A DNA stretch of 49,514 nucleotides, from positions 1 through 49,514 of the forward strand of contig NIVC01000791.1 of assembly GCA_002269645.1 (NCBI GenBank). Direction: 5' to 3'. The notes beneath the pieces are model-generated. The model was given only the letters and a program-made list of their open reading frames with translations, did no database searches and was not told where the DNA came from. Source of the stretch: Macrostomum lignano. Lineage: Eukaryota. Positions 1-31,408 of the stretch are shown piece by piece. The number at the start of each line of letters is the position of its first letter. Position 1 is the first letter of the stretch. The position numbers were made by a program, and so were the translations under genes.

Positions 1-5
1 TTTAG

Positions 6-4652
<4,647 letters not shown>

Positions 4653-5490: not shown

Positions 5491-6184
5491 GCCAAGGACC
5501 ACTTAAGTAGAAGGACGGGAAACCTCGTTTCTTAGAAAAAATTTTGGAAGGCCGGTTTTCCTAGAAAAATGCACTACGGAGATAGGAAGTTTTCATTTTT
5601 CAGCACAAAAATTGCTACTGCTTTTGATAGGAGGCAGATCCAGTGTTCATCTTTTGATATGTTGTGCCTTTCTTATTGCTCTATCGATATTTATAAAGCT
5701 TTTCGTTCAGAAAATTTGGATTCTATGTGAATTTTTTATTCTACGTACATTTTCACGTGTCTTGTGCCTGAAATACATTAAAATGCCACGGATTGTCTCT
5801 TTGGTTTTATGAGTCTATTTTATCGATGATCATTCTTACCTGACTGTGTAACAAATATTTGTAACAGAGATGATAAAATAGATTTATAAAACCAAATATT
5901 GGAGCTGTGCATTTTTGTGATTTTTAGATACAGGAAATGTACGTAGAATAGGAAATTCACATAGAATCCTAATTTTCGGAACGAAAAGCTTTGTAAATAT
6001 CGATAGAGCAGTAAAAAAGGCACAACATATCAAGGGATAAACACTGAATCTGCCGCCTATCAAAAGCGATTTTGTGCTGAAAAATGGGAACTTCCTATCT
6101 CCATAGTGTGTTTTTTCGGGAAAACTTGCCTTCTGGAATTTTCTAAGAAACGAGGTTTCCCGTCCTGCTTAAGTCGTCCTTGGC
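5491..6184. mobile_element. Foldback/MITE-like element made almost entirely of long imperfect inverted repeats
   Basis: Left arm ~5491-5824 (GCCAAGGAC...GGAAACCTCGTTTCTTAGAAAA...TTTGGTTTTATGAGTCTATTTTATC) is the reverse complement of right arm ~5872-6184 (GATAAAATAGATTTATAAAACCAAA...TTCTAAGAAACGAGGTTTCC...GTCCTTGGC). ATTA flanks both sides. Confidence 0.8.
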
Positions 6185-6670
6185 ATTAGCTATGCTTACG
6201 TACTTTAATCTAAAATTTTATTGTTCCTTTCTTTAAGTTTTAACTAGTATATGGTCACATTATAATTTCAAAATTTAGTACATGTACATTTAAAATTGAT
6301 GTGTGCATGTACGTAAATAAAATCTGGATTTTTTGAGACCCAAAAAATGCTTCAAGGTTCTGATTTAAAACGAATTGACTTTTAATGATTTTTTCTTTTT
6401 TGATAATGCGCTTAAATTGCAATTAGAATTTAACCGTAAAGACGCAAATAATATACATACACATCCCGTCACTTGGTTGCAATTTCTACGTCTGCAAAGT
6501 TGCTTGAATAAAATGGAGGTCGTATCAGCATTCTGTGTAACATTGTGTAGTTTCACTACAAATTGGTCCGGTGAGGCAGATCTGAGCCACCGACCTAAGG
6601 GTCGGTCTTGAGTAGGTCTTGCAGCGGACAGATGCGGTGGGCAAAGTTGGGAACGAATCGACGGTAAAAA

Positions 6671-8963
6671 CCGACGCCATAATGATTACATTTATTATTA
6701 ACCTTGTAATGTATAACGTTTACTGACTGCTGTTCCGATATTCTCAAAGACTCGTGAGGACCACTACTCGCATTTGGAACAAGTTTTGGACCGCCTAAGA
6801 ACACACGGCCTACAGGTTCCTTTGAAGAAGTGCGAATTCTTTCAATCCGAGGTAGATTTCCTTGGCCATCGCGTGACTCTTGAAGGAATAAAACCTCTCC
6901 AGAAGAAGATCCAAACAATCACTGACTGGCCGACACCCACGGATTCGAACGCACTTCGGCGCTTCCTCGGTGTCGTTGGTTTCTACCGTCGATTCGTTCC
7001 CAACTTTGCCGATCGCATCTGTCCACTGCAAGACCTACTCACTGCATCACTACAGTCAGCAGGAAACTTCCAATGGACAGAGCAGCATCAGAAATCTTTC
7101 GAAAACATCAAACAAGCTCTCTCAGAGAGACTGCTGCATCATCCGGACCCCAACTGTACTGCGTACCACCTGTCACTGATGCCTCAGCCGACTGTGTTGG
7201 TGCCGTTCTGCATCAAACCTCAGCTTCAACCGGAACGTCACCTCTTGGCATGTTCAGCAAGTAGTTGTCGTCATCTCAAAGGATGTACAGCACGTTCGAC
7301 CGAGAACTACTCGCGGCGTACCTGCTGGCAGTGTTGCACTTCCGCAGCCTCATTGAAGGACTGAGCGTGACCTTGTTCACCGATCATAAACCACTAGCTC
7401 AGGCCTTCCACGCAAATCGCACCACTACGTCAGATCGCAATCAGCGCTATTTGACCGTCTTGTCCGAGTACGTGGCAGATGTCCAGTACATTCGCGGTGC
7501 AGACAACGTAATAGCTGATGCCGGCCCTTTCTCGACTGCCTGACTTCCCAGTGAATGATCACGTGTCCGACATCGCAACAGTCGCTGTAGTCGCTGCCCC
7601 ATCAAGCCAATTCCCTGTTGATCTGCCCAGTATCGCTGAAGCACAACGACCAGAGTCGTTCTCACCTGCACTAAATATTCGATCGTTTTCTCTGAACAAA
7701 GACGTCGTCGTTTGGTGTGAGACGTCAACGCCGTATCCTCGCCCGATCATTCCGCCGTCTCTCCGCGACGCCGTGATTGCCTCCTTCCATCGACTTGGTC
7801 ATTTCGGCTACCGTAAAACAGCAAAACACATCACAGAACGTTACTTTTGGCCCGGAATGCGTAAGTCCATCAAGACCTACTGCTGCTGGAACTGCCAGGA
7901 CTGCCAACGGAGTAAAGTCACTCGCCACACTCTCTCCCCGCAACAGGCCTTCGCATTACCATCAAATCGCTTTGAGGCGGTACACATCGATATTGTGGGA
8001 CCACTTCCACCAGCTAATGCTACCACCTTTGGCCACCAGTCTACCCGCTACCACGATGGTCGACCGCTCGACTGGCTGGCTAGAAGCTACACCACTGGAA
8101 TCAATAACCGCGGAAGTAGTCGCCCATACATTCGTCTCGTCTTGGGTCTCGCGCTACGGGAGTGCCACTGTATGTAATCACTGATCGGGGGCGCCAAGTT
8201 CGAATCAGAATTCTTTCACTCGGTCTCGTCATCAATTGGTTTTCATCGCGATTACGCACAACGGCGTACCACCCTCAAACCAATGGCAAGGTCGAGCGAG
8301 CCCATCGCACCCTGAAGACGATGCTACGTGCTCGAGGCAATGACTGGCTGACAGACCTACCTGTGGCTCTCCTCGCGATGCACGTCGCACCTGACGACCA
8401 ATGAATATCACCGTTCACCAGGGTTACCGGCGAGCTTCCGATGGTTCCGCGCATTCTAACTTCTGAACCACTCGCCCCAACGGACATTCGGACACGGCTG
8501 CAGGAACTGCTGACAGAGTTATAACGAGTCCACACGCGAAGACGCACGAAACACGGAGCTACGTACCCAAGGACCTGGAAATGGCTAGCTAAATTCGTCT
8601 GGGTTCGGGTCGATCGCGTGCGGTCGCCGCTCGAGGCGCCGTACTCAGAGCCGTATCGCGTGAAACAGCGAACTGACAAGTTCTTCGTTATTTTCCTACC
8701 GTCAGGCAACACCTACCGAATCTGTCTCTATCGATCGCCTCAAGCCGGCGCGACTTTCGTTTCCGAAGTCTGCTGTTCAGCCGGCCGCGAACCCGCTGCC
8801 GGAAAAGCCGCCAAACTAGATCAGGAACCGGTGGACTCATCACCTCCTAGAGCGACCTTTAGCGGCCGCCAAGTCCAATTCCGACGCCATAATGATAGAT
8901 TACATTTATTATTAAAACCTTGTAATGTATAACGTCTACTGACTGCTGTTCCAATGTTCTCAA
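6671..8963 (+). mobile_element. Degenerate Ty3/Gypsy LTR-retrotransposon pol fragment (RT C-terminus, RNase H, integrase)
   Basis: RT: LKKCEFFQSEVDFLGHRV...LRRFLGVVGFYRRFVPNF. RNase H: TDASADCVGAVLHQ, YSTFDRELLA, TLFTDHKPL, YIRGADNVIADA. Integrase: HRLGHFGYRKT...YFWPGMR...CQDCQ, VHIDIVGPLP, ITDRGRQ, TTAYHPQTNGKVERAHRTLK. RT-RH-IN order indicates Gypsy. Many frameshifts. ~77-bp direct repeats at 6671-6747 and 8881-8963. Confidence 0.93.
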
Positions 8964-11859: not shown

Positions 11860-13067
11860 CTTGGCCATCCCCTATGACCACTATTGCAATAAATAAAAGA
11901 CTGCCTTTGGCTAGTAAAAGTTGCCTATTAGCATCATTGCCCTACTATTAAATGGTTTGTTCATTTTGTTGGTATGACAATGAATGACAATGATACTAGT
12001 TGATGAAGTGCAACATGGTCTAGCTAATAAAGGTCAGATGGGATCCCAATCCAATCCCGAAATCTTGGGATCCCAAGGAAAATTGAATTCCCGCGGGACC
12101 ATAATCCCAACCCTAAAAAACTCAAGATTTGGGAACAGGTCTTTTGATTAAAAATTTATAGAATTAGTGATTACTTGAAGGTATTTTGCTTTAACTTGTA
12201 CTCGTTATATTTACTTTGTTGGTTACAAAACTTCATATCAATTTCGTTGTGTTTTACTTCTTGATCTTGACCATCTTTTCTCAATTTTGTTTAACTTTAC
12301 ATGGACAATACACTAAAATACCTGATCCTAATTCCTGAATCCTGATCCCGATCCTGAGAAAAAAATTATTCCCGATCCCGATCCCGCCCGAAGATTTCAA
12401 TCCCATCCAACCTCTACTGGCTAAGCATTGATATCTCATTGATAATGATCAACCTCATGGGATGTGAAGTGGCTCATTAGAATTCATTCATTAGAATAAC
12501 TGTAGATTATCTTTAAGGAATCAGACCAATGCAAATGCTAATGAATTTTTATTCCTGTCAATTTGCCTTAAGGCTCAAGCTTATTTTTGGCAAACAAAAT
12601 GAAAGAGTGATGCTTTGGAATATACAATTGGCTGCAGAGAGATAGGACATAGACAAAAGGGGGACTTAAAGGGTACAAGAAAGTGGCTTTGCCAGATAGA
12701 CAATATGAGAAATAATAGTAGTATATTAATGCATTAATAAATGGTAATTTATGTGTGCATTCTTTCAATGTACAATAGGATGCAATGCAACATTACCTAA
12801 ATGGTCTTTAGCACTTTGCTACCACTCTCTTACTACCAGAATTTTGTAGCCAGAATGTGTAGAGCTGCCTGCACTGTCAAGCTGCCAATGTTGAGCAATA
12901 CTAGTGGGAGCCAGGAGTGAGCAACCTTTGCCTAGTAGACCATATAATATACTAATCAAGAAGCTCTTACCTGTGTCTGCCAGACCATGTATAATGAAAT
13001 GTGTTGCTTTGACTCTCTCCAACTTATCATTTGCCTCATCTAGCCAATTGAGAACAAAGTTATACAC
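11860..13067 (-). pseudogene. Decayed Pif1-family (SF1B) helicase, probably a Helitron-type relic
   Basis: Minus strand, in the correct order: Walker A FIIHGLADTGKSFLI (~12960-13000), motif Ia LLAPTSIA then frameshifted NIGSLTVQAALHI, Walker B-like RLIIINEISMLS (~12420-12455), motif III-like IVVIGDG (~11864-11884). Stops and frameshifts throughout. Confidence 0.68.
12028..12416. mobile_element. Non-autonomous hAT-like MITE (389 bp) inserted in the helicase relic
   Basis: TIRs TAAAGGTCAGATGGGAT ... ATCCCATCCAACCTCTA (14/17 match). 8-bp TSD CTAGCTAA / CTGGCTAA (7/8). Subterminal (A)TCCCG motifs. Confidence 0.82.
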
Positions 13068-14389
13068 ATGCTACTATTCAATGTTCAACTGCTAGTGATT
13101 GGTACTAGCAATGGCATTGGACTCATATCTATCAGCTAAGTATCCCATTTGCAGCTTAGAAAAAAATCTGTCAACTTCCATGACAAGAAAAAAACTTTGC
13201 TGACATTCTAATCAAAGTTTTAACTAGTATCCAGGTTGCAATCCACACTATTATGGTTGATCACACTTGTAGCAGCAGCCAGCAGCACAAATGTAGTACC
13301 TAATTAGGCTAATTGTAGTATTGCTCTAGGCCTTTGTAAATTGACTACCTTTGCTGCTATCATGTCCTAGGTCATTAGGGTATTGCCATTGATGTCACTA
13401 ACTCACTGGCATCCAATTCAATAGTTGTAGCTTCTCTTATTAGGTTAGATATATGGCAAATGCACAATGTATAAGCTGGCTGATTCTACTCAAATGCCTT
13501 TTGTCATGTATCATGCTCAGCTTTCAGCTTTCAGTATAAGACCATCTAGCAGTATACTTTGGTTATAACTAGTATAAATAAGGCCTATGTCTAATGGTAA
13601 AAACTGCCATTATGATTGACTATATTCATTGATATACTAATCAATTGGTAGAAACAAATTTTTTTGCTTAAGGCATTTTATAGGGATTTCCATTAGAATA
13701 AAACACTATTAAAAGTGGGTATAGTTGGTTCACTTTACTATAAGCCTATTTTGTAGGCAATTAGTTAGTATATATCAGTGACAAAAAAAGACATTTTGGA
13801 GCAATCTTAAACTTGTTTGGCAAATGCAATTTAAAGATTAACCTGATTTGAAATTACAAAGCAGCAGTATAAGATCCATGAGTACTTCTATTGTAATATT
13901 TTTTAAAAGCTATTACCAAATATAGCTAGAAAAGACTAGAAATTGATATAAACAACTTAAAACAACTTGGAGTGCAGTTAATCGGGAAAATGTAATAAAA
14001 ATTTTTTAAAGCTAATATTGAATTTTGTTAATTTCAAAAACCTAAATTTGTCAATGTATTGTTGTTTAATTTACATTCATAATAAAATGTATTTATGCAT
14101 ATATTCTATAGTTTTCGGGAATTTAGTGTTTTGTATTTTTTGGAAAAGCTATTGCAATCTTTTCCTTTTTAGACATGTTTATTTATCAACAATTTTAGCA
14201 ACACATTATAGTACTTTTGTATAAATAGCCTGAAATAGAATTTTTTGTAGATACACTGAACATTGTGTATATATATTTGCTACTATAATGCTATACTGTA
14301 TCTAAGGCTATTATACTATGTGCTCAAATGCCAGTTCATTGCTCACTCACTCATCAGACCTGCTATGCTGCAAGCTGTACTCTGCTGGC

Positions 14390-15247
14390 ATGAAGATGAG
14401 CGCACCGGCTGATCCACTTCACAACTCAGTCTCGTTGCGCCGGCTCTATCCGCCAGACACTGACGATGTCAAATGTTTGGCTAAACACCTGTTCCCTATC
14501 GATTATCCAGACTCCTGGTTTCACGATATCGTCACCAATGATCGATTTTATACCCAAGCTGCGTTGCTAGGCAACGAGATGGTCGCTATGCTAGTAGCCG
14601 AGGTCAAGCCTATTGCTATAGTTAATAAAGAGGATGCCGATTTGTTAAGCTGTCAATTCCCGCCGGAGACAAAGGTGTGCTACTTGCTCAGCATCGGTGT
14701 CAGCCAGCCCTACAGAAGGCGCGGCTTAGCTCGCCTGTTGCTAAGCAACCTGTTAAGCCATTTACACGCCAGCTTAGGCAGCCAGGTGAAATGCGTCTAC
14801 CTGCACGTGTTGGCTACAAATCGGGCTGCTATAGAGTTCTATCAGGGCCAGGGGTTTCAGCTGCACTGCCGGCTGCCGTTCTACTATGTGATCGAGGGCC
14901 GCCCGGCCGATGCCTGCTCCTATGCGCTGTACCTCAATGACGGCTGTCCACCAGAGTCCTGCTTGCAGACTGTGGCCAGATCCGCCAGTTTAGTGGCATC
15001 CTGCGTCTGCTCCAGGCTATTATCAGTCACCTGCTACTGTCGGCGCTGCCATCTGATGCCCAGCTGTCTGTATTCCATTGTTCGGCGTCTGGGTTCCTTA
15101 ATGGGACTGTCCTGTTCGGATTCTATTACTAATAGTAGTAGTAGATCGTGCAGTGTTTCTATGCTGCTTATGCAGTTGAAGCATCGATTGGTTTATTCTG
15201 CAACAGGCTCGCAGGGTACTTTGTCGTCTAGCACTGCCAGTGTGTGA
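14390..15247 (+). CDS. NAA60: N-alpha-acetyltransferase 60 (NatF), GNAT family, intronless CDS (~285 aa)
   Basis: LFPIDYPDSWF, MLVAEVK, KEDADLL, CYLLSIGV...YRRRGLARLLL, VYLHVLATNRAAIEFY, LPFYYVIEG, YLNDGCPP match NAA60 motifs. An upstream in-frame ATG also exists at 14318. Confidence 0.92.
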   Translation: MKMSAPADPLHNSVSLRRLYPPDTDDVKCLAKHLFPIDYPDSWFHDIVTNDRFYTQAALLGNEMVAMLVAEVKPIAIVNKEDADLLSCQFPPETKVCYLLSIGVSQPYRRRGLARLLLSNLLSHLHASLGSQVKCVYLHVLATNRAAIEFYQGQGFQLHCRLPFYYVIEGRPADACSYALYLNDGCPPESCLQTVARSASLVASCVCSRLLSVTCYCRRCHLMPSCLYSIVRRLGSLMGLSCSDSITNSSSRSCSVSMLLMQLKHRLVYSATGSQGTLSSSTASV

Positions 15248-15474
15248 TGAACCTCTAAGATACTGGCCCAATATCTGCGCTTTTATCTGAACTGTCAGTA
15301 AATCCAGTGATTAAAATCATCTCTCTAAAGGGAATGGTCTGTGCGATAGTTACAATTTAAACTGATGCTAGCTGAAGTCAATTTCTTCAAATAATTTACT
15401 GTAACATCTTACATAGTATGCTAGCCTAATTTTGTGCACTCTGTACTTGTAAAGAGATATAATTCGCTTGTAAA

Positions 15475-15985
15475 AAGATCCGCCAACCACAGATGTAAAC
15501 CCACTCTATCATTTTAGGTTCAATATTTAACCTTAAACATCCGCCCTCTACACCTAAAGATCTGCTCTTTACCATTTCAGATTCGTTTTCTATCCTTAAA
15601 GATCCGCCCTCTGCACTTTAAGATCCGCCCTCTACCCTTTAAATATCCGCCCTCTACCCTTTTAATATCCGCCCTCTACCCTTTTAAGATCCGCCCTCTA
15701 CCATTTTAAGATCCGCCCTCTACCCTTTTAAGATCCGCCCTCTACCATTTTAAGATCCGCCCTCTACCCTTTTAAGATCCGCCCTCTACCCTTTTAATAT
15801 CCGCCCTCTACCCTTTTAATATCCGCCCTCTACCCTTTTAAGATCCGCCCTCTACCCTTTTAAGATCCGCCCTCTACCCTTTTAAGATTCGCCCTCTACC
15901 CTTTTAATATCCGCCCTCTAACCTTAAAGATCCGCTTTCTAACTTTTAGAATCCACCCTCTAACATTTAAGATCCGCCCTCTATT
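15475..15985 (+). repeat. 22-bp minisatellite (AAGATCCGCCCTCTACCCTTTT)
   Basis: Visible tandem units, degenerate at the edges. Confidence 0.95.
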
Positions 15986-16459
15986 ATGAAAAGTAGTGCT
16001 ATGACAATGACATATTCTTTCATTTGCGCAACAAAAGTGCCTTTCTGTATAGATTTCGCTTGATGCTGATTTTAAATAGAAAAACAAGCCCAAACATTAG
16101 CGCATATCATCGTTTTAGTATGTAGTTAAGTCTGCAGACTTTTGTATACTGTGCTTACTTGAAATGTATTAATGCTAGTTGTTCCATGTTGATTTTGATT
16201 TTTTTAAAGAATCTTTGAATCGCACTTGTCAGTCCGAGTCTTACTTTGTTTATTCAATTATTCTTTCGTGTTATGTATGCCCATTCAGATACTGTCATTC
16301 TGTTCGCGGTGCTGATTAATGCCTCTTATTACCTGTGCATACCTGTGCTGCAGTGTGCACTTTAATTACGCTTGTTTGTTTGCTATTTTTTCATCTAGCT
16401 TTTTTTCTTTCCAAAGAAAATACTTTTCTGCTACAAAGACATAACGCTTAAGACGTTAT

Positions 16460-16945
16460 AAGGCAACCAGGGTTATTCCCCATGAGCCATAGACAACCAG
16501 GGTTATTCTCCATGAGCCATAGACAACCAGGGTTATACCCCCTTGAGCCATAGACAACCAGGGTTATTCCCCATGAGCCATAGACAACCAGGGTTATTCC
16601 CCCTTGAGCCATAGACAACCAGGGTTATTCCCCATGAGCCATAGACAACCAGGGTTATACCCCCTTGAGCCATAGACAACCAGGGTTATTCCCCGTGAGC
16701 CATAGACAACCAGGGTTATACCCCCTTGAGCCATAGACAACCAGGGTTATTCCCCATGAGCCATAGACAACCAGGGTTATTCCCCCTTGAGCCATAGACA
16801 ACCAGGGTTATTCCCCGTGAGCCATAGGCAACCAGGGTTATACCCCCTTAAGCCATAGGCAACCAGGGTTATTTCCCATGAGCCATAGACAACCGGGGTT
16901 ATTCCCCATAAGCCATAGGCAACCAGGGTTATTCCCCATGAGTCC
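16460..16945 (+). repeat. 30/31-bp minisatellite (CCATAGACAACCAGGGTTATTCCCCATGAG)
   Basis: About 16 visible units, partly alternating between 30- and 31-bp variants. Confidence 0.96.
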
Positions 16946-17290
16946 TGCACCAGTGTTCAATAGAACACTTGCGTCAAAGCATGCCTAGAAAGCTTTTAAT
17001 ATTATTTTATGTTTAATAGCGGATTGTATGATTTCTATCAGCTGCTATAAAATGCTGTCAGTGTAACTTGCAACAATAGAACAAATTTGCAGAATTGGTG
17101 AACAATTATTACTCATACATACCTGATTTGTCTCTTTAATGTTCCTCATTTTTCTTCGTTTTTCAAATAGCTAATTTTAATGCTTACAATTAGTTTATCT
17201 AGTCACTGACGTCCGGGATCCAGATGACTTGCTTTTGCTGAATAATTTGATACAATTACAAATCATCCCTTATTTTAATCTTGCAGCTAA

Positions 17291-20200
17291 ATGTGGCAAG
17301 ACGGCATGCTACCGCTCTTGGCTCTGCTTCTGTTTGCCGCTGCTCCCGTGGCAATGGCCGATGGGTCCCGGCTGGACCTGCAGGGAAAAACTCTAAAAGT
17401 GGCCACCCTGCTGGTGCGTTAATAGCTCAAATAACTAATCCTCAGGTTGAGCTGGCAGCCTCCCAGATCCTCAGGTCGAATTGCCAGCCTCCCAGATCCT
17501 CAGGTCGAATTGCCAGCCTCCCAGATCCTCAGGTCGAATTGCCAGCCTCCCAGATCCTCAGTCAGTTGCTGGGCCAGCCTCCCAGATCCTCAGTCAGTTG
17601 CTGGGCCAGCCTCCCAGATCCTCAGTCAGTTGCTGGGTCAGCCTCCCAGATCCTCAGTCAGTTACTGGGTCAGCCTCCCAGATCCTCAGTCAGTTGCTGG
17701 GCCAGCCTCCCAGATCCTCAGGTCGAATTGCCAGCCTGCCAGATCCTCAGTCAGTTGCTGGGCCAGCCTCCCAGATCCTCAGTCAGTTGCTGGGTCAGCC
17801 TCCCAGATCCTCAGTCAGTTGCTGGGCCAGCCTCCCAGAGTGTCAGTTGCTGGGTCAGCCTCCCAGATCCTCAGTCAGTTGCTGGGCCAGCCTCCCAGAT
17901 CCTCAGTCAGTTGCTGGGCCAGCCTCCCAGATCGTCAGTTGCTGGGCCAGCCTCCCAGATTCTCAGTCAGTTGCTGGGCCAGCCTCCCAGATCCTCAGTT
18001 GCTGGGCCAGCCTCCCAGAGTAACAGTTGCTAGGCCAGCCTCCCAGAGTGTCAGTTTCTGGGCCAGCCTCCCAGAGTGTCAGTTTCTGGGCCAGCCTCCC
18101 AGATGCCCAGTTTCCGGGCGGCCCCCTCATCGCAGCTCACACCGCTGTCCCCTGCTCTGCACCCACCAGGAAGTGCCGTTCAGCTTCAAACAAGGCGACA
18201 ACAGCAGCAGCATTCGCGGCTTTTACATCGACATTCTGGACCTGCTCGCTGAAGAGCTGAACTTCAAGTACAACCTGTACGTTGTGCCCGACAACAAATA
18301 CGGAGCCCAGCTGCCCAACGGCACTTGGAACGGCTTGATCAGAGAAGTTATTGACGGGGTATGCGACAATGCGCATGTATAATATTAGTTTTCTAGCGTT
18401 ATAATAACAATAATCTTTTGCACCTAGACCAACCGACAGCTCAGCCGCAGCTATTGCGCGGCGCATCTGAAGACTGCGTGCGGCTGTTCAGTCCAAGGAC
18501 TTGGGGGGGGGGGGTCGCCACACAAACCCTCAATTACCCCAGCTAATGCTGGCACCCATTTTACAGCTGGGTGAACTGAAGCCATGCAGAGTTAAGTGTC
18601 TTGCTCAAGGACACTAATTGTTCCTTCCAGTGGGTCGACAATCGAACCCCCGACCTCAGGCGCGCAGTTGCTAAAAACCCATACTGTTGAATCACTCACC
18701 GCACGCAGAAAGCCGACTTCGCTCTTGCTCCGTTGAGAATTACCGCTAATCGAGAAAAATACGTGGATTTCACCGTGTCTGTGGCTTCATCCGGCATGTC
18801 AATTGTTGTCAAGCAGGAGCTGCAGGAGGCCGAGTCCTATGCCGCTCTGTTCCTGATGCCGTTTGCTCCTTCGGTAAGTTGCAGTTTGTTCTTTTGTGTG
18901 CTGTTATGGTTGTACTGTGATGGTTGTACACAGTCATCAATACAGACTGGTGGTTGTACACAGTCTTATCAATACAGACTGGTGATTGTACACAGTCTTA
19001 TCAATACAGACTGGTGGTTGTACACAGTCTTATCAATACAGACTGGTGATTGTACACAGTCTTATCAATACAGACTGATGGTTGTACACAGTCTTATCAA
19101 TACAGACTAGTGATTGTACACAGTCTTATCAATGCAGACTGATGATTGTACACAGTCTTATCAATAAAGACTGATGGTTGTACACAGTCTTATCAATACA
19201 GACTGATGATTGTAGACAGTCTTATCAATACAGACTAATGGTTGTACACAGTCATCAATACAGACTGATGATTGTACACAGTCTTATCAATACAGACTGA
19301 TGGTTGTACACAGTCTTATCAATACAGACTGATGGTTGTACACAGTCTTATCAATACAGACTGATGGTTGTACACAGTCTTATCAATACAGACTGATGGT
19401 TGTACGCAGTCTAATCAATACAGACTGATGGTTGTACACAGTCTAATCAATACAGACTGATGATTGTATACAGTCTTATCAATACAGACTGATGATTGTA
19501 CACAGTCTTATCAATAAAGACTGATGGTTGTACACAGTCTTATCAATACAGACTGTTGGTTGTACACAGTCTTATCAATACAGACTGATGATTGTATACA
19601 GTCTTATCAATACAGACTAATGGTTGTACACAGTCATCAATACAGACTGATGATTGTACACAGTCTTATCAATACAGACTGATGGTTGTACACAGTCTTA
19701 TCAATACAGACTGATGGTTGTACGCAGTCTAATCAATACAGACTGATGGTTGTACACAGTCTAATCAATACAGACTGATGATTGTATACAGTCTTATCAA
19801 TACAGACTGATGATTGTACACAGTCTTATCAATAAAGACTGATGGTTGTACACAGTCTTATCAATACAGACTGTTGGTTGTACACAGTCTTATCAATACA
19901 GACTGATGATTGTATACAGTCTTATCAATACAGACTAATGGTTGTACACAGTCATCAATACAGACTGATGATTGTACACAGTCTTATCAATACAGACTGA
20001 TGGTTGTACACAGTCTAATCAATACAGACTGATGATTGTACACAGTCTTATCAATACAGAATGATGGTTGTACACAGTCTTATCAATACAGACTGATGGT
20101 TGTACACAGTCTTATCAATACAGACTGATGGTTGTACACAGTCTAATCAATACAGACTGATGGTTGTACACAGTCTTATCAATACAGACTGATGGTTGTA

Positions 20201-23200
20201 CACAGTCTTATCAATACAGACTGATGGTTGTACACAGTCTTATCAATACAGACTGATGGTTGTACACAGTCTTATCAATACAGACTGATGGTTGTACACA
20301 GTCTAATCAATGCAGACTGATGATTGTACACAGTCTTATCAATACAGACTGATGGTTGTACACAGTCTTATCAATACAGACTGATGGTTGTACACAGTCT
20401 AATCAATGCAGACTGATGATTGTACACAGTCTTATCAATACAGAATGATGGTTGTACACAGTCTTATCAATACAGAATGATGGTTGTACACAGTCTTATC
20501 AATACAGACTGATGGTTGTACACAGTCTTATCAATACAGACTGATGGTTGTACACAGTCTAATCAATACAGACTGATGATTGTACACAGTCTTATCAATA
20601 CAGACTGATGGTTGTACACAGTCTTATCAATACAGACTGATGGTTGTACACAGTCTTATCAATACAGACTGATGGTTGTATACAGTCTTATCAATACAGA
20701 CTGATGATTGTACACAGTCTTATCAATACAGACTGATGGTTGTACACAGTCTTATCAATACAGACTGATGGTTGTACACAGTCTTATCAATACAGACTGA
20801 TGGTTGTACGCAGTCTAATCAATACAGACTGATGGTTGTACACAGTCTAATCAATACAGACTGATGATTGTATACAGTCTTATCAATACAGACTGATGAT
20901 TGTACACAGTCTTATCAATAAAGACTGATGGTTGTACACAGTCTTATCAATACAGACTGTTGGTTGTACACAGTCTTATCAATACAGACTGATGATTGTA
21001 TACAGTCTTATCAATACAGACTAATGGTTGTACACAGTCATCAATACAGACTGATGATTGTACACAGTCTTATCAATACAGACTGATGGTTGTACACAGT
21101 CTTATCAATACAGACTGATGGTTGTACACAGTCTAATCAATACAGACTAGTGATTGTACACAGTCATCAATACAGACTGATGATTGTACACAGTCTTATC
21201 AATACAGACTGATGGTTGTACACAGTCTAATCAATACAGACTAGTGATTGTACACAGTCTTATCAATACAGACTGATGGTTGTACACAGTCTTATCAATA
21301 CAGACTGTTGGTTGTACACAGTCTTATCAATACAGACTGTTGGTTGTACACAGTCTTATCAATACAGACTGATGGTTGTACACAGTCTTATCAATACAGA
21401 CTGTTGGTTGTACACAGTCTTATCAATACAGACTGATGGTTGTAGACAGTCTTATCAATACAGACTAATGGTTGTACGCAGTCTTATCAATACAGACTGA
21501 TGGTTGTACACAGTCTTATCAATACAGACTGTTGGTTGTACACAGTCATCAATACAGACTGATGATTGTAGACAGTCTTATCAATACAGACTAATGGTTG
21601 TACACAGTCATCAATACAGACTGATGATTGTACACAGTCTTATCAATACAGACTGATGGTTGTACACAGTCTTATCAATACAGACTGATGGTTGTACACA
21701 GTCTTATCAATACAGACTGATGATTGTACACAGTCTTATCAATACAGACTGATGGTTGTACACAGTCTTATCAATACAGACTGATGGTTGTACACAGTCT
21801 TATAAATACAGACTGATGATTGTACACAGTCTTATCAATACAGACTGATGGTTGTACACAGTCTTATCAATACAGACTGATGGTTGTACGCAGTCTAATC
21901 AATACAGACTGATGGTTGTACACAGTCTTATCAATACAGACTGATGGTTGTACACAGTCTTATAAATACCGAAGTGCGAGTTGCGACCCCCACAGTGCCC
22001 AGCCTGACCTCACATACACATAACCTGTTGCAGACGTGGATTCTGGTAATTCTGTTCTACTTTATCTGCACGGCACTAGCCTTCACCCTGTGGCTGCTGT
22101 CGCCGTACGAGCAGGGCGAACCTCAGCTAGATCAGATTCCAATTCTGCGTCGCTCTAAGAAATCTGCCTGCTCCAGTTTCATGCTGGTCACTGGCGGACT
22201 GTTTGTTCAAGGCGAGTTATTGTAATTTCTTTTCGCTTGCTTTTTCGTACTTAAATGGTCGTTGCAAGTCGCATTTTACTTCTATTCATTAAAATGTGCC
22301 CGTTGCTATGTTTTTGCTATGCCAGATTGGCTGTTGCTATGCCAGATTAATTGTTGCTATGCCAGATTGACTGTCACTATGCCAGATTGACTGTTGCTAT
22401 GCCAGATTAATTGTTGCTATGCCAGATTGATTGTTGCTATGCTATGCCAGATTGATTGTTGCTATGCCAAATTGGCTGTTGCTATGCTAGACTGGCTGTT
22501 ACTATGCCAGATTGGCTGTTGCTATGCCAGATTAATTGTTGCTATGCCAGATTGATTGTTGCTATGCTATGCCAGATTGATTGTTGCTATGCCAAATTGG
22601 CTGTTGCTATGCTAGACTGGCTGTTACTATGCCAGATTGGCTGTTGCTATGCCAGATTAATTGTTGCTATGCCAGATTGATTTTTGCTATGCCAGATTGG
22701 CTGTTGCTATGCCAGATTGGCTGTTGCTATGCCAGATTAATTGTTGCTATGCCAGATTGATTTTTGCTATGCCAGATTGGCTGTTGCTATGCCAGATTAA
22801 TTGTTGCTATGCCAGATTGATTGTTGCTATGCCAGATTGACTGTTGCTATGCCGGATTGATTGTTGCTATGCCAGATTGACTGTTGCTATGCCAGATTGA
22901 TTGTTGCTATGCCATATTAATTGTTGGTATGCCAGATTGATTGTTGCTATGCCAGATTGATTGTTGCTATGCCAGATTAATTGTTGCTATGCCAGTACTT
23001 TATAAACTTTGCCAAATACAACCTGCAGGCTTCGCTCGCACGCCGAAGTCGCCAGCCATCCGGATTCTAGCCAGCGTGTGGTGGCTGTTCACCCTGGTCA
23101 CCGTGGCCTGCTACATCGGCAACATGGGCCCCGTGCTCAACGACCGTCTGGCTATTAAACGCCTTCAGCCGCCGTTTGAAAGCTTCGAAGAATTGGTTGG

Positions 23201-25278
23201 TCAATCGAAAATTCCCTACGGTGTGCTCAAGGGCGCCGCTTCGCACAACATGTTCAAGGTGGGGATTGAGTTTTAATTAATCATCTAGATGTCTTTGAGT
23301 CGTTTGGCTCTGTTTCATGTCAAGCGTATCAATGTCCCAGCCTCTGATTAACCACAAAAATCCTTAAATCACTTGATTCCTAGATCACTTAAAACCTAAT
23401 AGACTAATAACCCGGTGTGGTAGTCTAATGAACTAATATGGATAGGCTTATGACCTGATAGAGTAGGCTAAAGACCTAATATGGTAGGCTAATGATCTAA
23501 TAGGGTTACCTAATGCCCTGATATGGTGGTCTCATGACCTAATAGAATTGCCTAATGGCCTAATAAAGTAGGCTAATGATCTAATAGGATATTACCTAAT
23601 GATCTAATATGGTCTACCTAATGGCCTAATAGAATTTCCTAATGACTATGCTACTCATGAGACTAATAGAGTAGTCTCATGACCTAATAGGGTAAAGCTG
23701 ATGACCTAATATAGGAAGGTCAATAACCTAATATGGTAGTCTCATGGCCTCATAGGATTGCCTAATGCCCAAATAGGGTAACCTAATGACCTAATAAGTT
23801 AGGCTAAAAACCTGATGATCTACCTAATGGCTAAGAACCTAATATAGTAAGGGAATCAAACCCCTATTCCACGCATTCCAACGCAGTCCTCCAAGCTGCC
23901 CAGCTTCAAGCGGGCCGACAAATACCTGCGCGACAACCCGGACAGCCTGGCCAACACGGTGCTGCAGGGCATCAGCCGGGCCAAGACAGGCAACTACGCT
24001 TTCCTAGCCGAGAGCCTGACAGCCGAGTACTACACCAGCATCAACTGCGACCTCATCGCCGCCGCTACTGGCATCACCACCCTAGACTTTGCTCTGGCTG
24101 TAGCCAAAAGTAAGTACATGTGCATCCTTTTCTGGCGCAGGGTGCTTTTCACCTTTTACTTACTTTCACTCCTTGATTGTTAAGCTCGATTTCCCAGAGT
24201 GTCAGTTGCTGGGCAAGCCTCCCAGATCCTCAGTTGCTGGGCCAGCCTCCCAGATCCTCAGTTGCTGGGCCAGCCTCAAGGATCCTCAGTTGCTATGCCA
24301 GCCTCCCAGATCCTCAGTTGCTGTGCCAGCCTCCCAGATCCTCAGTTGCTGGGCCAGCATCCCAGATCCTCAGTTGCTGGGCCAGCATCCCAGATCCTCA
24401 GTTGCTGAGCCTACCTCCCAGATCCTCAGTTGCTGGGCCAGCCTCCCAGAGTGTCAGTTGCTGGGCCAGCCTCCCAGAGTGTCAGTTGCTGGGCCAGCCT
24501 CCCAGAGTGTCGGTTGCTGGGCCAGCCTCAAGGATCCTCAGTTGCTATGCCAGCCTCCCAGATCCTCAGTTGCTGTGCCAGCCTCCCAGATCATCAGTTG
24601 CTGAGCCAGCATCCCAGATCCTCAGTTGCTGGGCCAGCATCCCAGATCCTCAGTTGCTGGGTCAGCCTCCCAGATCCTCAGTTGCTGAGCCAGCCTCCTA
24701 GATCCTCAGTTGCTTGGCCAGCCTCCTAGATCCTCAGTTGCTGGGCCAGCCTCCTAGATCCTCAGTTGCTAGGCCACATTGTAAGCCTTAGCTTTACGCT
24801 ACCGCTGCACTCCTCCGTGACCCTGCCAGACTCTTCTCTGCGCTGCATACTCAACGAAGCCATCCTGAAGGTGAAGATGTCCGGCCAGCTCACAGCCACC
24901 AAGGACATCTGGTGGACTAAAAACCGGGACTGTTCCGACCAGCTAAGCTTCGAAGCCAAGTCCATGGCCCTCATGCCTGGCGACTTTGCCTGCCTGTATG
25001 GCCTGGTCCTCATCGGCGCCCTGGTCGCTCTGCTGGCTTTGCCAGTGGAAATGTATATAAAGAACGCTTTGCCCTTTAAATTATTGCCCAGTCGCGGCGG
25101 CGGCACGACCGCTGCTGCTGCTGCTGGAGCTACTCCGGCTGCTTCGACTGCCGCGGTCGCCGGCGCTGCCCCAGAAGCTGCCGCTGCTCCTGCTGCCGCT
25201 GGACCGTCGTCCAGTGCGGCTGCCGATACCACCGGCGGCGAGTCGGCCGAAGCAGCAGAGCAGAGGCCTCTGGTGTGA
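17291..25278 (+). CDS. Ionotropic glutamate receptor-family channel lacking the amino-terminal domain (IR-like); exons 17291(17306)-17413, 18170-18358, 18709-18873, 22034-22211, 23029-23258, 23887-24109, 24830-25278; ~513-518 aa
   Basis: Domain order: signal peptide MLPLLALLLFAAAPVAMA; S1 (KTLKVATLL/EVPF...GFYIDILDLLAEELNFKY...YGAQLPNGTWNGLIREV...ADFALAPLRITANREKYVDFT); M1 (FLMPFAPS/TWILV); M2 (GGLFVQG...PKS); M3 (RILASVWWLFTLVTVACYIGNM); S2 (FESFEELVGQSKIPYGV...YAFLAES...CD...WWTKNRDC); M4; Ala-rich tail. All exon phases join to an open frame (1542 nt from 17306). Confidence 0.92.
17440..18115 (+). repeat. 28-32-bp minisatellite of the same family as 62-920, in iGluR intron 1
   Basis: CCAGCCTCCCAGATCCTCAG(TCAG)TTGCTGGG units plus GGTCGAATTG variants. 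Confidence 0.96.
18545..18690 (-). mobile_element. CORE-like tRNA-derived SINE remnant in iGluR intron 2
   Basis: CCCATTTTACAGCTGGGTGAACTGAAGCCATGCAGAGTTAAGTGTCTTGCTCAAGGACAC resembles the antisense CORE domain of MIR-type SINEs. The reverse complement of AATCGAACCCC gives a Pol III B-box (GGGGTTCGATT). Confidence 0.55.
18915..21967 (+). repeat. 32-bp minisatellite (CAGACTGATGGTTGTACACAGTCTTATCAATA), ~95 units, iGluR intron 3
   Basis: About 3 kb of visible tandem units. Confidence 0.98.
22312..22996 (+). repeat. 20-bp minisatellite (GCTATGCCAGATTGATTGTT), iGluR intron 4
   Basis: Visible tandem units. Confidence 0.97.
23395..23850 (+). repeat. Degenerate ~21-bp tandem repeat (ATGACCTAATAGAGTAGGCTA-like), iGluR intron 5
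   Basis: Recurring CCTAATG/ACCTAATA motifs at ~21-bp spacing. Confidence 0.75.
24186..24775 (+). repeat. 28-bp minisatellite family array, iGluR intron 6
   Basis: Same units as 62-920. Confidence 0.96.
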
Positions 25279-27181: not shown

Positions 27182-28086
27182 TGTCAAGTGTTGGTCTCTT
27201 GTGGTGTCTGGCCTGTTGAGTGCTCTTGCACTTTTTGAGTTGTTTTTTTGTGTGCGCCCTAGGCAGCCATCCCCAGACCAGTTCTGGCTGGTTGGGGGGG
27301 GGGGCGCTTAGCCCGGCTTGTCTTTCCCCGCGGCGGCCACTGATTGGCTGGGCTTGTGTTTTTGTGTTTTTATTTTCTAGCCCCCATTCAGTCAGATCTG
27401 CTCGGCGAGCACGCTGATTGGCTGAGAGCTTATTTCTTTTGTTTGGCGTTTCTCTCTCTCTCTCTCACGCTGTCTGCCCCTCTACCCTGTTAAGTGGTAT
27501 ATAGTGCTCAGGCCCAGTCAGCTCCCCGCTCTTTGCTCCGCGCCCCGCGCCAGCTCTTCAAACTAAACTAGCGAGATTCAAGCGAGCCGTGTCTATACGG
27601 TCTCTTACTGCGAAGACTCAATTGATTGTGAGCAAATAAAGCGGTCAGGTGGTAGAGATATTCGAACGAGCTCCACAGCTTCTGGCACCGGTAAGACCCC
27701 GAGTTCATTCGCTTCTTTAGCTTTTCCGAGGCCTTGCCGTAGCAGTGATTCCATAGCTAGAGCGTCATCACGCCTGCGGACTGTGACCACTGCAGCACAG
27801 CAGCGTTGTATATTGAGTATTATTGTAGTACTGTACCGGTTACTTTATATAGTGTGAACAACCTACAGTATCGAAAATAGAAGCCCTCGAGAGTGTCACC
27901 ACACCTCGAGCCGCAGCGTGAACTCTGAGTGTCACAACACAAGAGGGATCGAACTATTATCGCAGAGCGTCGTCACGCCTGCTCGTATCCATAAAAGTAC
28001 AGACAGAGCGTCACTACGCGCCTGTTATATTACGTATAATATATTGTACTCTGGACTGGGCACCCAAACCAGCCCGGGTCACGACA
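27182..28086 (+). mobile_element. Solo LTR (905 bp)
   Basis: TGTC...GACA termini; 4-bp TSD CTCT on both sides; CCAAT-type boxes (CTGATTGGCTG x2); TATATA at 27498; AATAAA at 27635; no internal ORF. Confidence 0.75.
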
Positions 28087-28231: not shown

Positions 28232-28335
28232 TATCAAAAGCCAGATCCTCAGTTTCTGGGCAAGCCTCCCAAATCATCAGTTGCTGGGCCAGCCTCCCAG
28301 AGTGTCAGTTGCTGGGACAGCCTCTCAGAGAGTGT
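28232..28335 (+). repeat. Short run of the 28-bp minisatellite family
   Basis: About 3 units including both the GATCCTCAG and GAGTGTCAG variants. Confidence 0.85.
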
Positions 28336-28349
28336 CAGGGGGATTGTAC

Positions 28350-30108
28350 TGGACACAGAATCTGGTGAGACGGTCCGAGGCAGGGAGTGCTGGACACAGA
28401 ATCTGGTGAGACGGTCCGAGGCAGGGAGTGCTGGACACAGAATCTGGTGAGACGGTCCGAGGCAGGGAGTGCTGGACACAGAATCTGGTGAGACGGTCCG
28501 AGGCAAGGAGTGCTGGACACAGAATCTGGTGAGACGGTCCGAGGCAGGGAGTGCTGGACACAGAATCTGGTGAGACGGTCCGAGGCAGGGAGTGCTGGAC
28601 ACAGAATCTGGTGAGACGGTCCGAGGCAGAGAGTGCTGGACACAGAATCTGGTGAGACAGGTCGGGGCAAGGAGTGCTGGACTTTCTGGACACAGAATCT
28701 GGTGCGACAGGTCGGGGCAAGGAGTGCTGGACTTTCTGGACACAGAATCTGGTGCGACAGGTCGGGGCAAGGAGTGCTGGACTTTCTGGACACAGAATCT
28801 GGTGCGACAGGTCGGGGCAAGGAGTGCTGGACTTTCTGGACACAGAATCTGGTGCGACAGGTCGGGGCAAGGAGTGCTGGACTTTCTGGACACAGAATCT
28901 GGTGCGACAGGTCGGGGCAAGGAGTGCTGGACTTTCTGGACACAGAATCTGGTGAGACAGGTCGGGGCAAGGAGTGCTGGACTTTCTGGACACAGAATCT
29001 GGTGAGACAGGTCGGGGCAAGGAGTGCTGGACTTTCTGGACACAGAATCTGGTGAGACAGGTCGGGGCAAGGAGTGCTGGACTTTCTGGACACAGAATCT
29101 GGTGAGACAGGTCGGGGCAAGGAGTGCTGGACTTTCTGGACACAGAATCTGGTGAGACAGGTCGGGGCAAGGAGTGCTGGACTTTCTGGACACAGAATCT
29201 GGTGAGACAGGTCGGGGCAAGGAGTGCTGGACTTTCTGGACACAGAATCTGGTGAGACAGGTCGGGGCAAGGAGTGCTGGACTTTCTGGACACAGAATAA
29301 GGTGAGACAGGTCGGGGCAAGGAGTGCTGGACTTTCTGGACACAGAATCTGGTGAGACAGGTCGGGGCAAGGAGTGCTGGACTTTCTGGACACAGAATCT
29401 GGTGAGACAGGTCGGGGCAAGGAGTGCTGGACTTTCTGGACACAGAATCTGGTGAGACAGGTCGGGGCAAGGAGTGCTGGACTTTCTGGACACAGAATCT
29501 GGTGAGACAGGTCGGGGCAAGGAGTGCTGGACTTTCTGGACACAGAATCTGGTGAGACAGGTCGAGGCAAGGAGTGCTGGACTTTCTGGACACAGAATCT
29601 GGTGAGACAGGTCGGGGCAAGGAGTGCTGGACTTTCTGGACACAGAATCTGGTGAGACAGGTCGGGGCAAGGAGTGCTGGACTTTCTGGACACAGAATCT
29701 GGTGAGACAGGTCGGGGCAAGGAGTGCTGGACTTTCTGGACACAGAATCTGGTGAGACAGGTCGGGGCAAGGAGTGCTGGACTTTCTGGACACAGAATCT
29801 GGTGAGACAGGTCGGGGCAAGGAGTGCTGGACTTTCTGGACACAGAATCTGGTGAGACAGGTCGGGGCAAGGAGTGCTGGACTTTCTGGACACAGAATCT
29901 GGTGAGACAGGTCGGGGCAAGGAGTGCTGGACTTTCTGGACACAGAATCTGGTGCGACAGGTCGGGGCAAGGAGTGCTGGACTTTCTGGACACAGAATCT
30001 GGTGCGACAGGTCGGGGCAAGGAGTGCTGGACTTTCTGGACACAGAATCTGGTGCGACAGGTCGGGGCAAGGAGTGCTGGACTTTCTGGACACAGAATCT
30101 GGTGAGAC
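28350..30108 (+). repeat. Composite satellite: 7 x 41-bp units followed by ~29 x 50-bp units (GGACACAGAATCTGGTGAGACAGGTCGGGGCAAGGAGTGCTGGACTTTCT)
   Basis: Visible units. ORF-track starts spaced 41 nt (28592/28633/28674) and 50 nt (29824/29874/29924) confirm the periods. Confidence 0.98.
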
Positions 30109-31408
30109 AGCAACAACTTCGAGCTCTGAGTTGGCCGCAACTTTTCTGCCCGATGTAATGTGTCATCGAATTCAATTTGATTAAAAGACTTCACGAAGAA
30201 ACTTTGAAAAAAGTCCCATTCAGAAAAATACGGATACGGTTTTTGTCCTTTACGAAATTTACTCATATGAAAAAATTATTTATTACATTTGAGATTAACA
30301 GAGATTAGAGAAGCGCTTATAACATAATTTTCGTAGGAACTTCTAGAAATGAGAACAACTACGCCAAGTATCCTTTTAGGCCATCTGTCCTGATTTACAG
30401 TGCGAACAAGCACTTTGTGTCGGGCACCATGTAGAGAGAAAATTAAGATAGGCTACGAGTATACTTAATTAGAGTTGATAACAAATAAGAAAGTAAGTGG
30501 GGCTCAGGGCCAAAATGAGTGTATTAAATTAGGCTGGGGTTGAGACGAGTACAAGTAAGAAGAGTAGGGGTGGAATTCGCGAGATTGAAGAGCCAATCAG
30601 AAAGCAGCGAGGGAGAGAGATAAGAATAGCAGAGATAACTAGACAGAGAGGGAGATAAAAACAGAGTAAACAGAAACAAGTGCAGATGAACTAAGGAAAT
30701 GACTAAGGAAGTCGCGACAAGTATGCCTTGGATTCATCTGTCTCGATCACAGATACTAAAATACACTACCTCGTACATGGGCAACTCAGGCTTATTTACT
30801 TTGTAAACCAGCTTTCTACTTTCAGTTCAGTAGCAAAGAAGAATACATAAGCTATTTTATAAAAATAAAGGCAGCTCAAAATGACTGACAAGTTTAGAAG
30901 CTTAAGCTTGCAGGCGTAAACAGCTTGCTAATTGGTTCAGCAATAATGTACATTAGCCAGTCCACTGAAATGTACATGGCAGCTTTAGGCTGGAATTTCC
31001 AAGAAAGGCAATAAAAATCGGGGCGGGTCGGGGGGTAGTGGAAAAAATCGCAGTTAGAGGTTTTAAGCTGCAGGGCCTGGGGTAAGAACCAATATGCCTT
31101 AGCTTTAAAAATACATTAAAATGCTTCTGTTTAACTTACTACTGAACTGAAAGTAGTTGGCAGGCAAATTTGCTGAGTGGCCACATCTAGTTATTCTAGT
31201 ATCTTTGGTCTCGATCTACTGTGCGAGAAGCATACGGTCGAATAATTTCCTTTCGATTGAGAAACCTCTTGAAGCAGTCATCGAGCTTATAAAAAATCAC
31301 ATTAAAAAGGAGAACGGTTTTAATAACTGGGTTACGAGCGTAATAAATAATATTATTTTGTTATTAATTTCGAATCTTATCTCAAATCTCAAGTCGTAAA
31401 ATCTCAAG

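Follow-up and report, generated by a model that had tools for sequence, protein, structure and literature searches.

A probable AMPA/kainate-like glutamate receptor subunit gene without an amino-terminal domain in the flatworm Macrostomum lignano

Subunits of the ionotropic glutamate receptor (iGluR) family that do without an amino-terminal domain (ATD) are known from the kainate-binding proteins (KBPs) of frog, chick and fish, ATD-less proteins running from S1 to M4 that were cloned between about 1989 and 1996; these vertebrate proteins and the Xenopus 'U1' subunit (XenU1) consist of S1-M1-M2-M3-S2-M4 in about 450-530 amino acids (aa). Prokaryotic GluR0 differs in having no M4 and a K+-channel-like pore. 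The ionotropic receptors (IRs) are divergent protostome relatives of the iGluRs, most of which carry an N-terminal region of about 200 aa without detectable homology (PMC2924276). Flatworms are absent from the surveys of both Croset 2010 (PMC2924276) and Ramos-Vicente 2018 (PMC6307864). Here we analyze a stretch of 49,514 nucleotides from the free-living flatworm Macrostomum lignano (contig NIVC01000791.1), hereafter the window, which contains an iGluR-family gene of seven exons on the + strand (17291-25278). Judging from sequence, we hold with a probability of about 0.72 that this is a functional gene for a naturally ATD-less, non-NMDA (AMPA/kainate-like) iGluR subunit that belongs to a small, fast-evolving clade restricted to Macrostomum.

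The exons, which were rebuilt by hand from open frames and splice signals, encode a product of 518 aa with the domain order signal peptide, S1, M1, pore loop, M3, S2, M4 and Ala-rich tail. The features of the gene, with positions in the window and GluA2 equivalents where these apply, are as follows.

17291-17413, + strand: exon 1 (aa 1-41), with the start codon at 17291 and the donor GTGCGT at 17414
17291-17359, + strand: predicted signal peptide in exon 1 (aa 1-23, cleaved as ...VAMA/DG)
from about 17384, + strand: first S1 strand in exon 1 (from about aa 32)
18170-18358, + strand: exon 2 (aa 42-104), S1 lobe, opening with EVPF
18299-18301, + strand: Y85 in exon 2, equivalent to GluA2 Y450
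18709-18873, + strand: exon 3 (aa 105-159), end of S1, carrying P112, R114 and R119
18736-18738, + strand: R114 in exon 3, at the GluA2 T480 position
18751-18753, + strand: R119 in exon 3, equivalent to R485, the binder of the alpha-carboxylate
22034-22211, + strand: exon 4 (aa 160-218 plus 1 nt), with M1 at about 22034-22102 and the pore loop M2 at 22163-22211
22205-22207, + strand: V217 in exon 4, the Q/R site
23029-23258, + strand: exon 5 (aa 219-295), with the pore-loop end GFARTPKSP, the M3-S2 linker and the start of S2
23058-23129, + strand: M3 in exon 5, with the degenerate gate motif ACYIGNMGPVLN
23130-23132, + strand: P253 in exon 5, within the M3 gate motif
23235-23243, + strand: A288-A289-S290 in exon 5, where GluA2 has 'GST'
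23887-24109, + strand: exon 6 (aa 296-369 plus 1 nt), S2 lobe, carrying C349, one half of the disulfide of the ligand-binding domain (LBD)
24007-24012, + strand: A336-E337 in exon 6, E337 being equivalent to GluA2 E705, the binder of the alpha-amino group
24830-25278, + strand: exon 7 (aa 370-518 plus stop), end of S2 with C404, and the stop codon TGA at 25276-25278
24973-25050, + strand: M4 in exon 7 (residues 418-443)
25051-25275, + strand: Ala-rich cytoplasmic tail in exon 7, ending in a conserved -PLV

Five of the introns are of the GT-AG type and intron 4 is GC-AG (AAG/GCGAGT, with the GC at 22212-22213). When compared with the mRNA of an ortholog (contig L001, described below) the spliced model is free of gaps at all six exon junctions, which validates the choice of splice sites. 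The GC donor of intron 4 is kept in a second M. lignano copy of the gene (L003, 12066-12067), and the junction is likewise backed by the ortholog mRNA. Pfam profiles recovered Lig_chan-Glu_bd (PF10613) over residues 33-140 (7e-31) and Lig_chan (PF00060) over residues 159-432 (3e-20), both exceeding their gathering scores, along with SBP_bac_3. Among PDB chains the top match was GluK3 (3.6e-66), with GluK2 and GluK5 at about 1e-62 to 1e-64 and AMPA receptors thereafter at about 1e-60, the whole range from GluK3 through GluK2 to GluA2 being 1e-66 to 1e-58. Residues 30-436 align end to end with residues 400-808 of GluK3, that is, with its LBD and transmembrane domain (TMD), and residue 400 of GluK3 lies directly past the ATD. 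Further, the hydropathy profile displays an N-terminal signal sequence and three membrane helices where M1, M3 and M4 are expected. The original prediction, made from the letters of the window alone, had described a complete iGluR-family gene without an ATD, encoding about 515 aa with S1-M1-M2-M3-S2-M4; the length is corrected here to 518 aa, the domain plan stands on the Pfam matches, the PDB alignment and the hydropathy profile, and the completeness of the gene without an ATD stands on the first two of these together with the ATD searches and the ortholog mRNA presented next. Its details of the start region were also exact, namely the AG of 'ttgcag' at 17285-17286, a TAA at 17288-17290 in frame with the ATG at 17291-17293, and an exon 2 that starts at 18170 with EVPF. 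Agreement of this extent is well in excess of what chance would give.

Exon 1 codes for MWQDGMLPLLALLLFAAAPVAMA/DGSRLDLQGKTLKVATLL, and S1 begins about 8-10 residues past the signal peptide. A Pfam scan of the 518-aa product did not find ANF_receptor (PF01094). A tblastn search of the window with 182 iGluR-family proteins, about 100 of them ATD-bearing, gave no match outside 17.2-25.3 kb, save for the repeat-derived tail of one faulty UniProt model (P0005, see below). We then used a profile hidden Markov model (HMM) of the ATD, made from 72 ATD regions. In a positive control it detected the ATD exons of an ATD-bearing M. lignano gene (on L002, see below) in colinear order with E-values of 3e-26, 7.5e-10 and 2.5e-5, whereas its best hit across the whole window had E = 2.2 and lay on the wrong strand inside an intron. 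Both searches thus lead us to reject hidden ATD exons in the window. The region upstream of the gene contains the following features.

14306-15244, + strand: single-exon open reading frame (ORF) for a GNAT acetyltransferase (Pfam 6.5e-13), the next gene upstream, 2 kb away
15245-17290, + strand: intergenic/5' region from the GNAT ORF to the start codon, about 2 kb, AT-rich and without ATD-coding potential
16464-16942: 30-nt tandem array within this region

Further, independent evidence is provided by a Logan contig (L001, 1625 nt, from run SRR28338165), which encodes a 72%-identical ortholog without introns; as its ORF is intronless, it evidently represents a spliced mRNA. This contig has, in order, an in-frame TAA, 15 nt, the ATG, the signal peptide, 'DGSR' and S1 (it reads MARSILTSPAMGLLLLLILLDSTALLVQA/DGSRMDYQGKNLRVV), and the signal peptide followed by 'DGSR' is common to the window gene, the ortholog mRNA and a 42%-identical M. 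lignano paralog (P0006). Thus, upstream exons coding for an ATD and spliced into the gene were looked for and none were recovered in the 17 kb upstream or in the rest of the window, and the orthologous transcript is itself ATD-less. The ATD is absent from both the locus and the orthologous transcript. We also considered the acceptor at 17286 as a site of spliced-leader (SL) addition; this is unlikely, since the 35-nt M. lignano SL ends in an ATG that would open the wrong frame there.

The product is about 99.6% identical to the GenBank entry 'hypothetical protein BOX15_Mlig028300g1 [Macrostomum lignano]' (P0001, 519 aa), from which it differs by P253S and one 1-codon indel, and which bears the UniRef label 'Glutamate receptor'. 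Neither Mlig028300 nor Mlig007793 is mentioned in any paper that we found. Other UniProt models of the locus are wrong: P0002 and P0003 skip exon 3, the bearer of the ligand-binding Arg, and in P0005 the GC donor is passed over, so that the model runs on into intron 4; its end is a frame of a 50-nt tandem repeat (28.3-30.2 kb). In the second genomic copy (L003, contig NIVC01001072.1) all seven exons and the GC donor recur, and there too the GNAT gene precedes the receptor gene. The gene spans 4831 bp in L003 as against 7988 bp in the window, the introns of L003 being shorter because the intronic tandem arrays differ in copy number. Between the coding sequences of the two copies there are 10 synonymous differences against a single non-synonymous one (P253S), and the Ala-rich tail contains one in-frame indel, while the flanking DNA of the copies is only 91-96% identical. 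Relative to the ortholog of L001 the dN/dS ratio is 0.20 overall (dS of about 1.0), with values of 0.11 for S1, 0.16 for M1-M3 and 0.22 for S2. The gene is real, intact and under purifying selection.

These data bear directly on the supposition that the missing ATD is an artefact, be it of a truncated model, of mis-assembly with ATD exons lying elsewhere, or of a decaying partial duplicate (a pseudogene). The faulty models P0002, P0003 and P0005 and the repeat-rich, polyploid nature of the M. lignano assemblies lend it some initial plausibility. However, the layout of in-frame stop, signal peptide and S1 recurs in two genomic copies, the paralog and the ortholog mRNA; the ATD HMM, which worked on its positive control, finds no ATD in the window, and the GNAT gene intervenes; and the frame is intact, with synonymous and non-synonymous differences between the copies in a ratio of 10:1 and a dN/dS of 0.20. 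We consider this explanation essentially refuted. The particular case of a recent, dead truncation of an AMPA or kainate receptor gene fails on the same dN/dS and on an architecture that is common to the 42%-identical paralog.

To place the protein we searched about 15 billion proteins, 1.84 billion cluster representatives being covered exhaustively with HMMER. More than about 35% identity was reached only by the M. lignano copies, the one orthologous transcript and the one M. lignano paralog with 42% identity. In the HMMER search the ortholog (770 bits) and the paralog P0006 (376 bits) stood out, all else being at most 34% identical. Beyond the Macrostomum set, three word-indexed protein searches yielded nothing but one short subunit from a nematode and one from Oikopleura, and the wider relatives needed HMMER. 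P0006 (493 aa) has the same exon layout and a signal peptide that leads straight into S1, which implies that the ATD-less architecture is old. Its gene lies on M. lignano contig NIVC01000151.1 (L002), 3.5 kb downstream of, and on the same strand as, a gene for a 988-aa ATD-bearing, kainate-like protein, which is 60-70% identical to a nemertean kainate-2-like protein in conserved exons; the two genes together take up 1-6448 and 10001-16646 of L002. That P0006 is a recent partial tandem duplicate of this ATD-bearing neighbor is ruled out, the two being only 27-38% identical. The Macrostomum clade receives a bootstrap of 92-100%, and its signature comprises an Arg at the T480 position, the pore-loop end GFARTPK, a Val or Ile at the Q/R site and a C-terminal -PLV. 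Judged by public data, the clade appears to be small, fast-evolving and specific to Macrostomum, and the lineage-specific family of the original prediction is thus upheld, no relatives above about 35% identity having come to light beyond the Macrostomum set and the ortholog transcript. The C-terminal -PLV (25267-25275), preceded by K or R, is shared by all three proteins, namely that of the window, its ortholog and P0006, although their Ala-rich tails otherwise diverge, and may serve in docking or trafficking.

In the ligand pocket the residues that hold the backbone of the ligand are invariant in the clade: R119 (GluA2 R485), E337 (E705), Y85 (Y450), P112 (P478) and the disulfide C349-C404. 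R114 is, like R119, invariant in all three members of the clade. In the window protein the 'GST' of alphaF is replaced by 'AAS' and 'LE' by 'AE', and the T480 position is taken by the clade-invariant R114; the paralog P0006 keeps 'GST'. Of the three diagnostic residues, namely the R of S1 and the T and D/E of S2, the window protein keeps the first and the last (R119 and E337) and shows a conservative change of T655 to Ser290, and P0006 keeps all three. R485 together with an acidic residue at position 705 is the mark of amino-acid binders according to Ramos-Vicente et al. (PMC6307864), and the first position of 'GST' is Gly in all the glutamate-selective receptors compared by Wang, Lynagh and colleagues, the others having S, Y or A (PMC13648236). 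The subunit is hence predicted to be amino-acid-gated, and as 'AAS', 'AE' and the Arg at the T480 position are not of the glutamate type, its agonist is probably other than glutamate.

The pore loop reads TGGLF(V/I)QGFARTPK and does not vary between the paralogs, although these share just 42% identity overall; in the window protein the Q/R site holds a Val and the +4 acidic site an Ala. In M3 the SYTANLAAF motif has become CYIGNMGPV, in which 2 of the 9 residues are kept and a Pro stands in the gate, and the M3-S2 linker contains a 4-residue insertion that P0006 lacks. Codon 253 (23130-23132), inside this gate motif, specifies Pro in the window and in the ortholog and Ser in P0001 and L003; it is the sole amino-acid substitution between the copies. 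The channel part is the most conserved region of the protein and yet is non-canonical, which argues for a pore that is in use with unusual permeation and gating.

The pore is also where another interpretation has to be weighed, namely that the protein resembles the KBPs in binding a ligand without forming a channel alone, and has a binding, modulatory or scaffolding role, or that of an obligate accessory to canonical iGluRs. Its architecture is that of the ATD-less vertebrate KBP and 'U1' proteins, NCBI calls short subunits of a frog and a chiton 'glutamate receptor U1-like', and the strongly degenerate gate motif differs between the copies by P253S. Against this, M1-M3, with a dN/dS of 0.16, is the most conserved part of the protein, and a pore loop that is invariant between 42%-identical paralogs is hard to square with an unused pore. 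We regard such a role as rather improbable, a judgment to which the trees described below also contribute.

If the gene does encode an AMPA/kainate-like subunit, four such subunits, alone or with ATD-bearing iGluR subunits, would form a ligand-gated cation channel, in which the bilobed S1/S2 clamshell would shut on a small ligand of the alpha-amino-acid type and pull the M3 gate. Given the Val at the Q/R site, the Ala at +4, the retention of 2 of the 9 residues of SYTANLAAF and the Pro in the gate, conductance, polyamine block and gating would be expected to differ from those of AMPA and kainate receptors. As there is no ATD, assembly would proceed via LBD, TMD and M4 contacts. AMPA and kainate receptors from which the ATD has been deleted stay functional channels. 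An ATD-less LBD-TMD chain of GluA4 with 429 aa is present in the PDB (9x57_A).

Several considerations weigh against this reading. The M. lignano gene's own transcript was not seen, and its expression is inferred from the ortholog contig L001 (SRR28338165). First exons more than 17 kb upstream are conceivable; these would have to skip both the conserved signal-peptide exon and the GNAT gene. The subunit could fail to gate alone, or to conduct at all, given its degenerate M3 gate, in which residue 253 is Pro in the window and Ser in the other copy, its hydrophobic Q/R site and the four residues inserted between M3 and S2. Finally, prediction of ligands from motifs has been warned of as fragile and unreliable (PMC13648236).

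The original prediction had gone further and interpreted the protein as IR-like. In this case it would be a flatworm member of the protostome IR family, functioning as a chemosensory tuning subunit in sensory neurons and needing an ATD-bearing co-receptor of the IR25a/IR8a type. There is some basis for the idea in a protostome protein without an ATD, in the alteration of 'GST' to 'AAS', and in a degeneracy of M3 such as is seen in tuning IRs (TYCGNL in IR93a and CYTGSI in IR21a in Croset's alignment). We constructed neighbor-joining (NJ) trees from two sets, the first combining the 29 fly iGluR/IR sequences of Croset's cleaned 217-column alignment with the window protein and about 150 relatives, and the second being a 417-column alignment without IRs. 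In the 217-column tree the clade joins divergent fly IRs with a node support of 24%. In 200 NJ replicates of these columns its sister group consisted only of IRs, divergent fly ones, in 90 (45%), was mixed in 14 more (7%) and was IR-free in 72 (36%), the clade being non-monophyletic in the remaining 12%. In the IR-free replicates the sister group even includes Nmdar2, which is a signature of long-branch attraction. The rate of the window protein is accelerated, its root-to-tip distance of 1.36 exceeding the median of 0.80 and that of IR25a (0.95), with the tuning IRs at 1.8-2.8.

When the IRs are left out of the data set, the clade is drawn instead to other short ATD-less iGluRs. In the 417-column tree the sister group is 61% ATD-less, as against 19% of the whole data set, with a node support of 8%; one member of the sister group in the bootstraps is P0026, the U1-like protein of a frog, and the branches concerned are all long. 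This attraction speaks for a KBP-like subunit as far as composition goes, but the grouping with U1-like proteins has a bootstrap of just 8%. The two NJ analyses therefore disagree, one giving an affinity to IRs and the other to 'short subunits', with low support in both, and both placements fit long-branch attraction. Pairwise identities to fly proteins are 35% for the AMPA type, 32% for the kainate type, 29% for IR25a, 25% for IR76b and 15-25% for the tuning IRs. The three diagnostic positions of Benton and Croset read R, E and T-to-S in the window protein, and the N-terminal region of insect IRs comprises about 200 aa (PMC2924276), as against about 8 residues in the Macrostomum protein. With a node support of 24%, 36% of the replicates IR-free and a closer resemblance to AMPA and kainate receptors (32-35%), the IR-like interpretation is not supported; we judge it unlikely, though deserving of serious attention. 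In the literature we found no inventory of flatworm IRs or iGluRs, apart from a report of a single IR in Schistosoma.

The original prediction had also treated the lack of an ATD as exceptional, and in this respect it does not hold, short ATD-less subunits being annotated in many phyla. Among the best 150 relatives many are 425-531 aa long and have a signal-peptide-like N-terminus followed almost at once by S1. They come from molluscs (the 'glutamate receptor U1-like' protein of the chiton Liolophura, P0108, 468 aa, and the abalone Haliotis), nemerteans (several in Tubulanus and two in tandem in Lineus, fused in one model), the annelid Owenia, the hemichordates Saccoglossus and Glandiceps, the nematode Cylicocyclus, and chordates (several amphioxus genes from three species, the tunicate Oikopleura, and the 'U1-like' protein of the frog Ascaphus, P0026, 482 aa). 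The 'U1' in these names presumably refers to the short unitary subunit of Xenopus, kin of the KBPs. The best match outside Macrostomum, P0007 (Lineus longissimus XP_064648822.1, 989 aa), looks like two tandem ATD-less iGluR units in one RefSeq model, with S1 starting at about 32 and about 526. Hence, the short ATD-less architecture is a known and recurrent kind. It is tempting to go one step further and join the Macrostomum clade with the vertebrate KBP/U1 proteins and the short subunits of molluscs, nemerteans, annelids and hemichordates in an ancient, unnamed bilaterian class of ATD-less receptors, the ligands of which would in part be other than glutamate. We view this as doubtful: the data hint at one ancient short-subunit class across Bilateria but give it no support.

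The remainder of the window is rich in repeats and mobile elements. Five of the six introns of the receptor gene consist mostly of minisatellite arrays (17483-18111, 18918-21969, 22314-22995, 23425-23796 and 24202-24776), with periods of 32, 32, 20, 42 and 28 nt and up to 96 copies, and the 'GCCAGCCTCCCAGATCCTCAG...TTGCTGG' unit of introns 1 and 6 reappears at the start of the window. Two more related downstream ORFs show a similar C-terminal half on opposite-frame comparison, and one of them begins with what resembles a signal peptide and contains a C-type lectin domain (1.8e-08). The mobile-element remains include the pol of an LTR retrotransposon with frame breaks (RVT_1, RNase H and an integrase zinc domain), a mariner/Tc1-like transposase (HTH_48, DDE_3) split across two frames and, as putative cases, LINE-like reverse-transcriptase ORFs at the end of the window and a helicase-like fragment. 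The positions are as follows.

1-940 and 28250-30280: further tandem arrays
1895-2212 and 3324-3620, + strand: exons of a phosphatidate cytidylyltransferase (CTP_transf_1)
6717-8900, + strand: mobile-element remains
12822-13070, - strand: mobile-element remains
27598-27623, + strand: SL-like element
37954-39098, - strand: mobile-element remains
41472-41963, + strand: one of the two related downstream ORFs
45596-46435, + strand: the other of these ORFs
47000-49514, + strand: mobile-element remains

The 26 nt of the SL-like element agree perfectly with the 5' part of the 35-nt SL of M. lignano (CGGTCTCTTACTGCGAAGACTCAATT); past 27623 it continues as GATTGTGAGCAA where the SL has TATTGCATG/GTAAG. 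An Rfam scan of the window found no RNA family, at this element or elsewhere, and its folding is no stronger than that of shuffled sequence (z = 0.08). Two origins are conceivable: the element may derive from an SL-RNA gene, as a variant or in a decayed state, or from a trans-spliced mRNA that was retro-copied, of which it would be the 5' end.

What is new here is a member from an unsurveyed phylum. The architecture was already known and the protein already had an uncharacterized database entry, and the addition is a modest one. Even so, the gene and its paralog indicate that free-living flatworms hold a constrained ATD-less iGluR lineage of their own, and the analysis brings to light the faulty UniProt models of the locus. 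A natural minimal receptor of this kind, with a signal peptide, LBD, TMD and M4, offers a test of iGluR assembly, trafficking and gating without an ATD, and the Arg at the T480 position, the 'AAS' and the Val at the Q/R site make questions of ligand and permeation directly testable. Since short subunits recur across Bilateria, the lack of an ATD alone is no evidence for IR identity. Were the ancient short-subunit class to be true, the ATD-less form would be ancestral to a receptor class that is not separated in the scheme of AKDF, NMDA, Epsilon, Lambda and IR.

In comparison with described systems, the prokaryotic GluR0 resembles the Macrostomum protein in having no ATD and an LBD split by the channel domain, and differs from it in that the latter has an M4 (residues 418-443) and a pore loop of the eukaryotic iGluR type. 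With the IRs it shares the status of a divergent protostome iGluR relative, the lack of a Pfam ATD, the faster rate, the degenerate M3 motif and an altered ligand-selectivity motif. Tuning IRs, however, have the N-terminal region of about 200 aa (PMC2924276) where the Macrostomum protein has S1 right after the signal peptide, and the latter keeps the diagnostic R and D/E, with T changed to S, and is nearer to AMPA and kainate receptors than to any fly IR. With GluK3, GluK2 and GluA2 it has in common the LBD disulfide, R485, E705, Y450, the WW motif before M4, and M4 itself; it departs from them in lacking their ATD of about 400 aa, in retaining 2 of the 9 residues of SYTANLAAF, and in its Val at the Q/R site, Ala at +4, 'AAS' and 4-residue insertion. 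The KBP, XenU1 and 'U1-like' proteins have the same domain plan from the signal peptide to M4, within about 450-530 aa and without an ATD, but are about 30% identical to the Macrostomum protein and group with it at a bootstrap of only 8%, and the Macrostomum clade has signature residues of its own.

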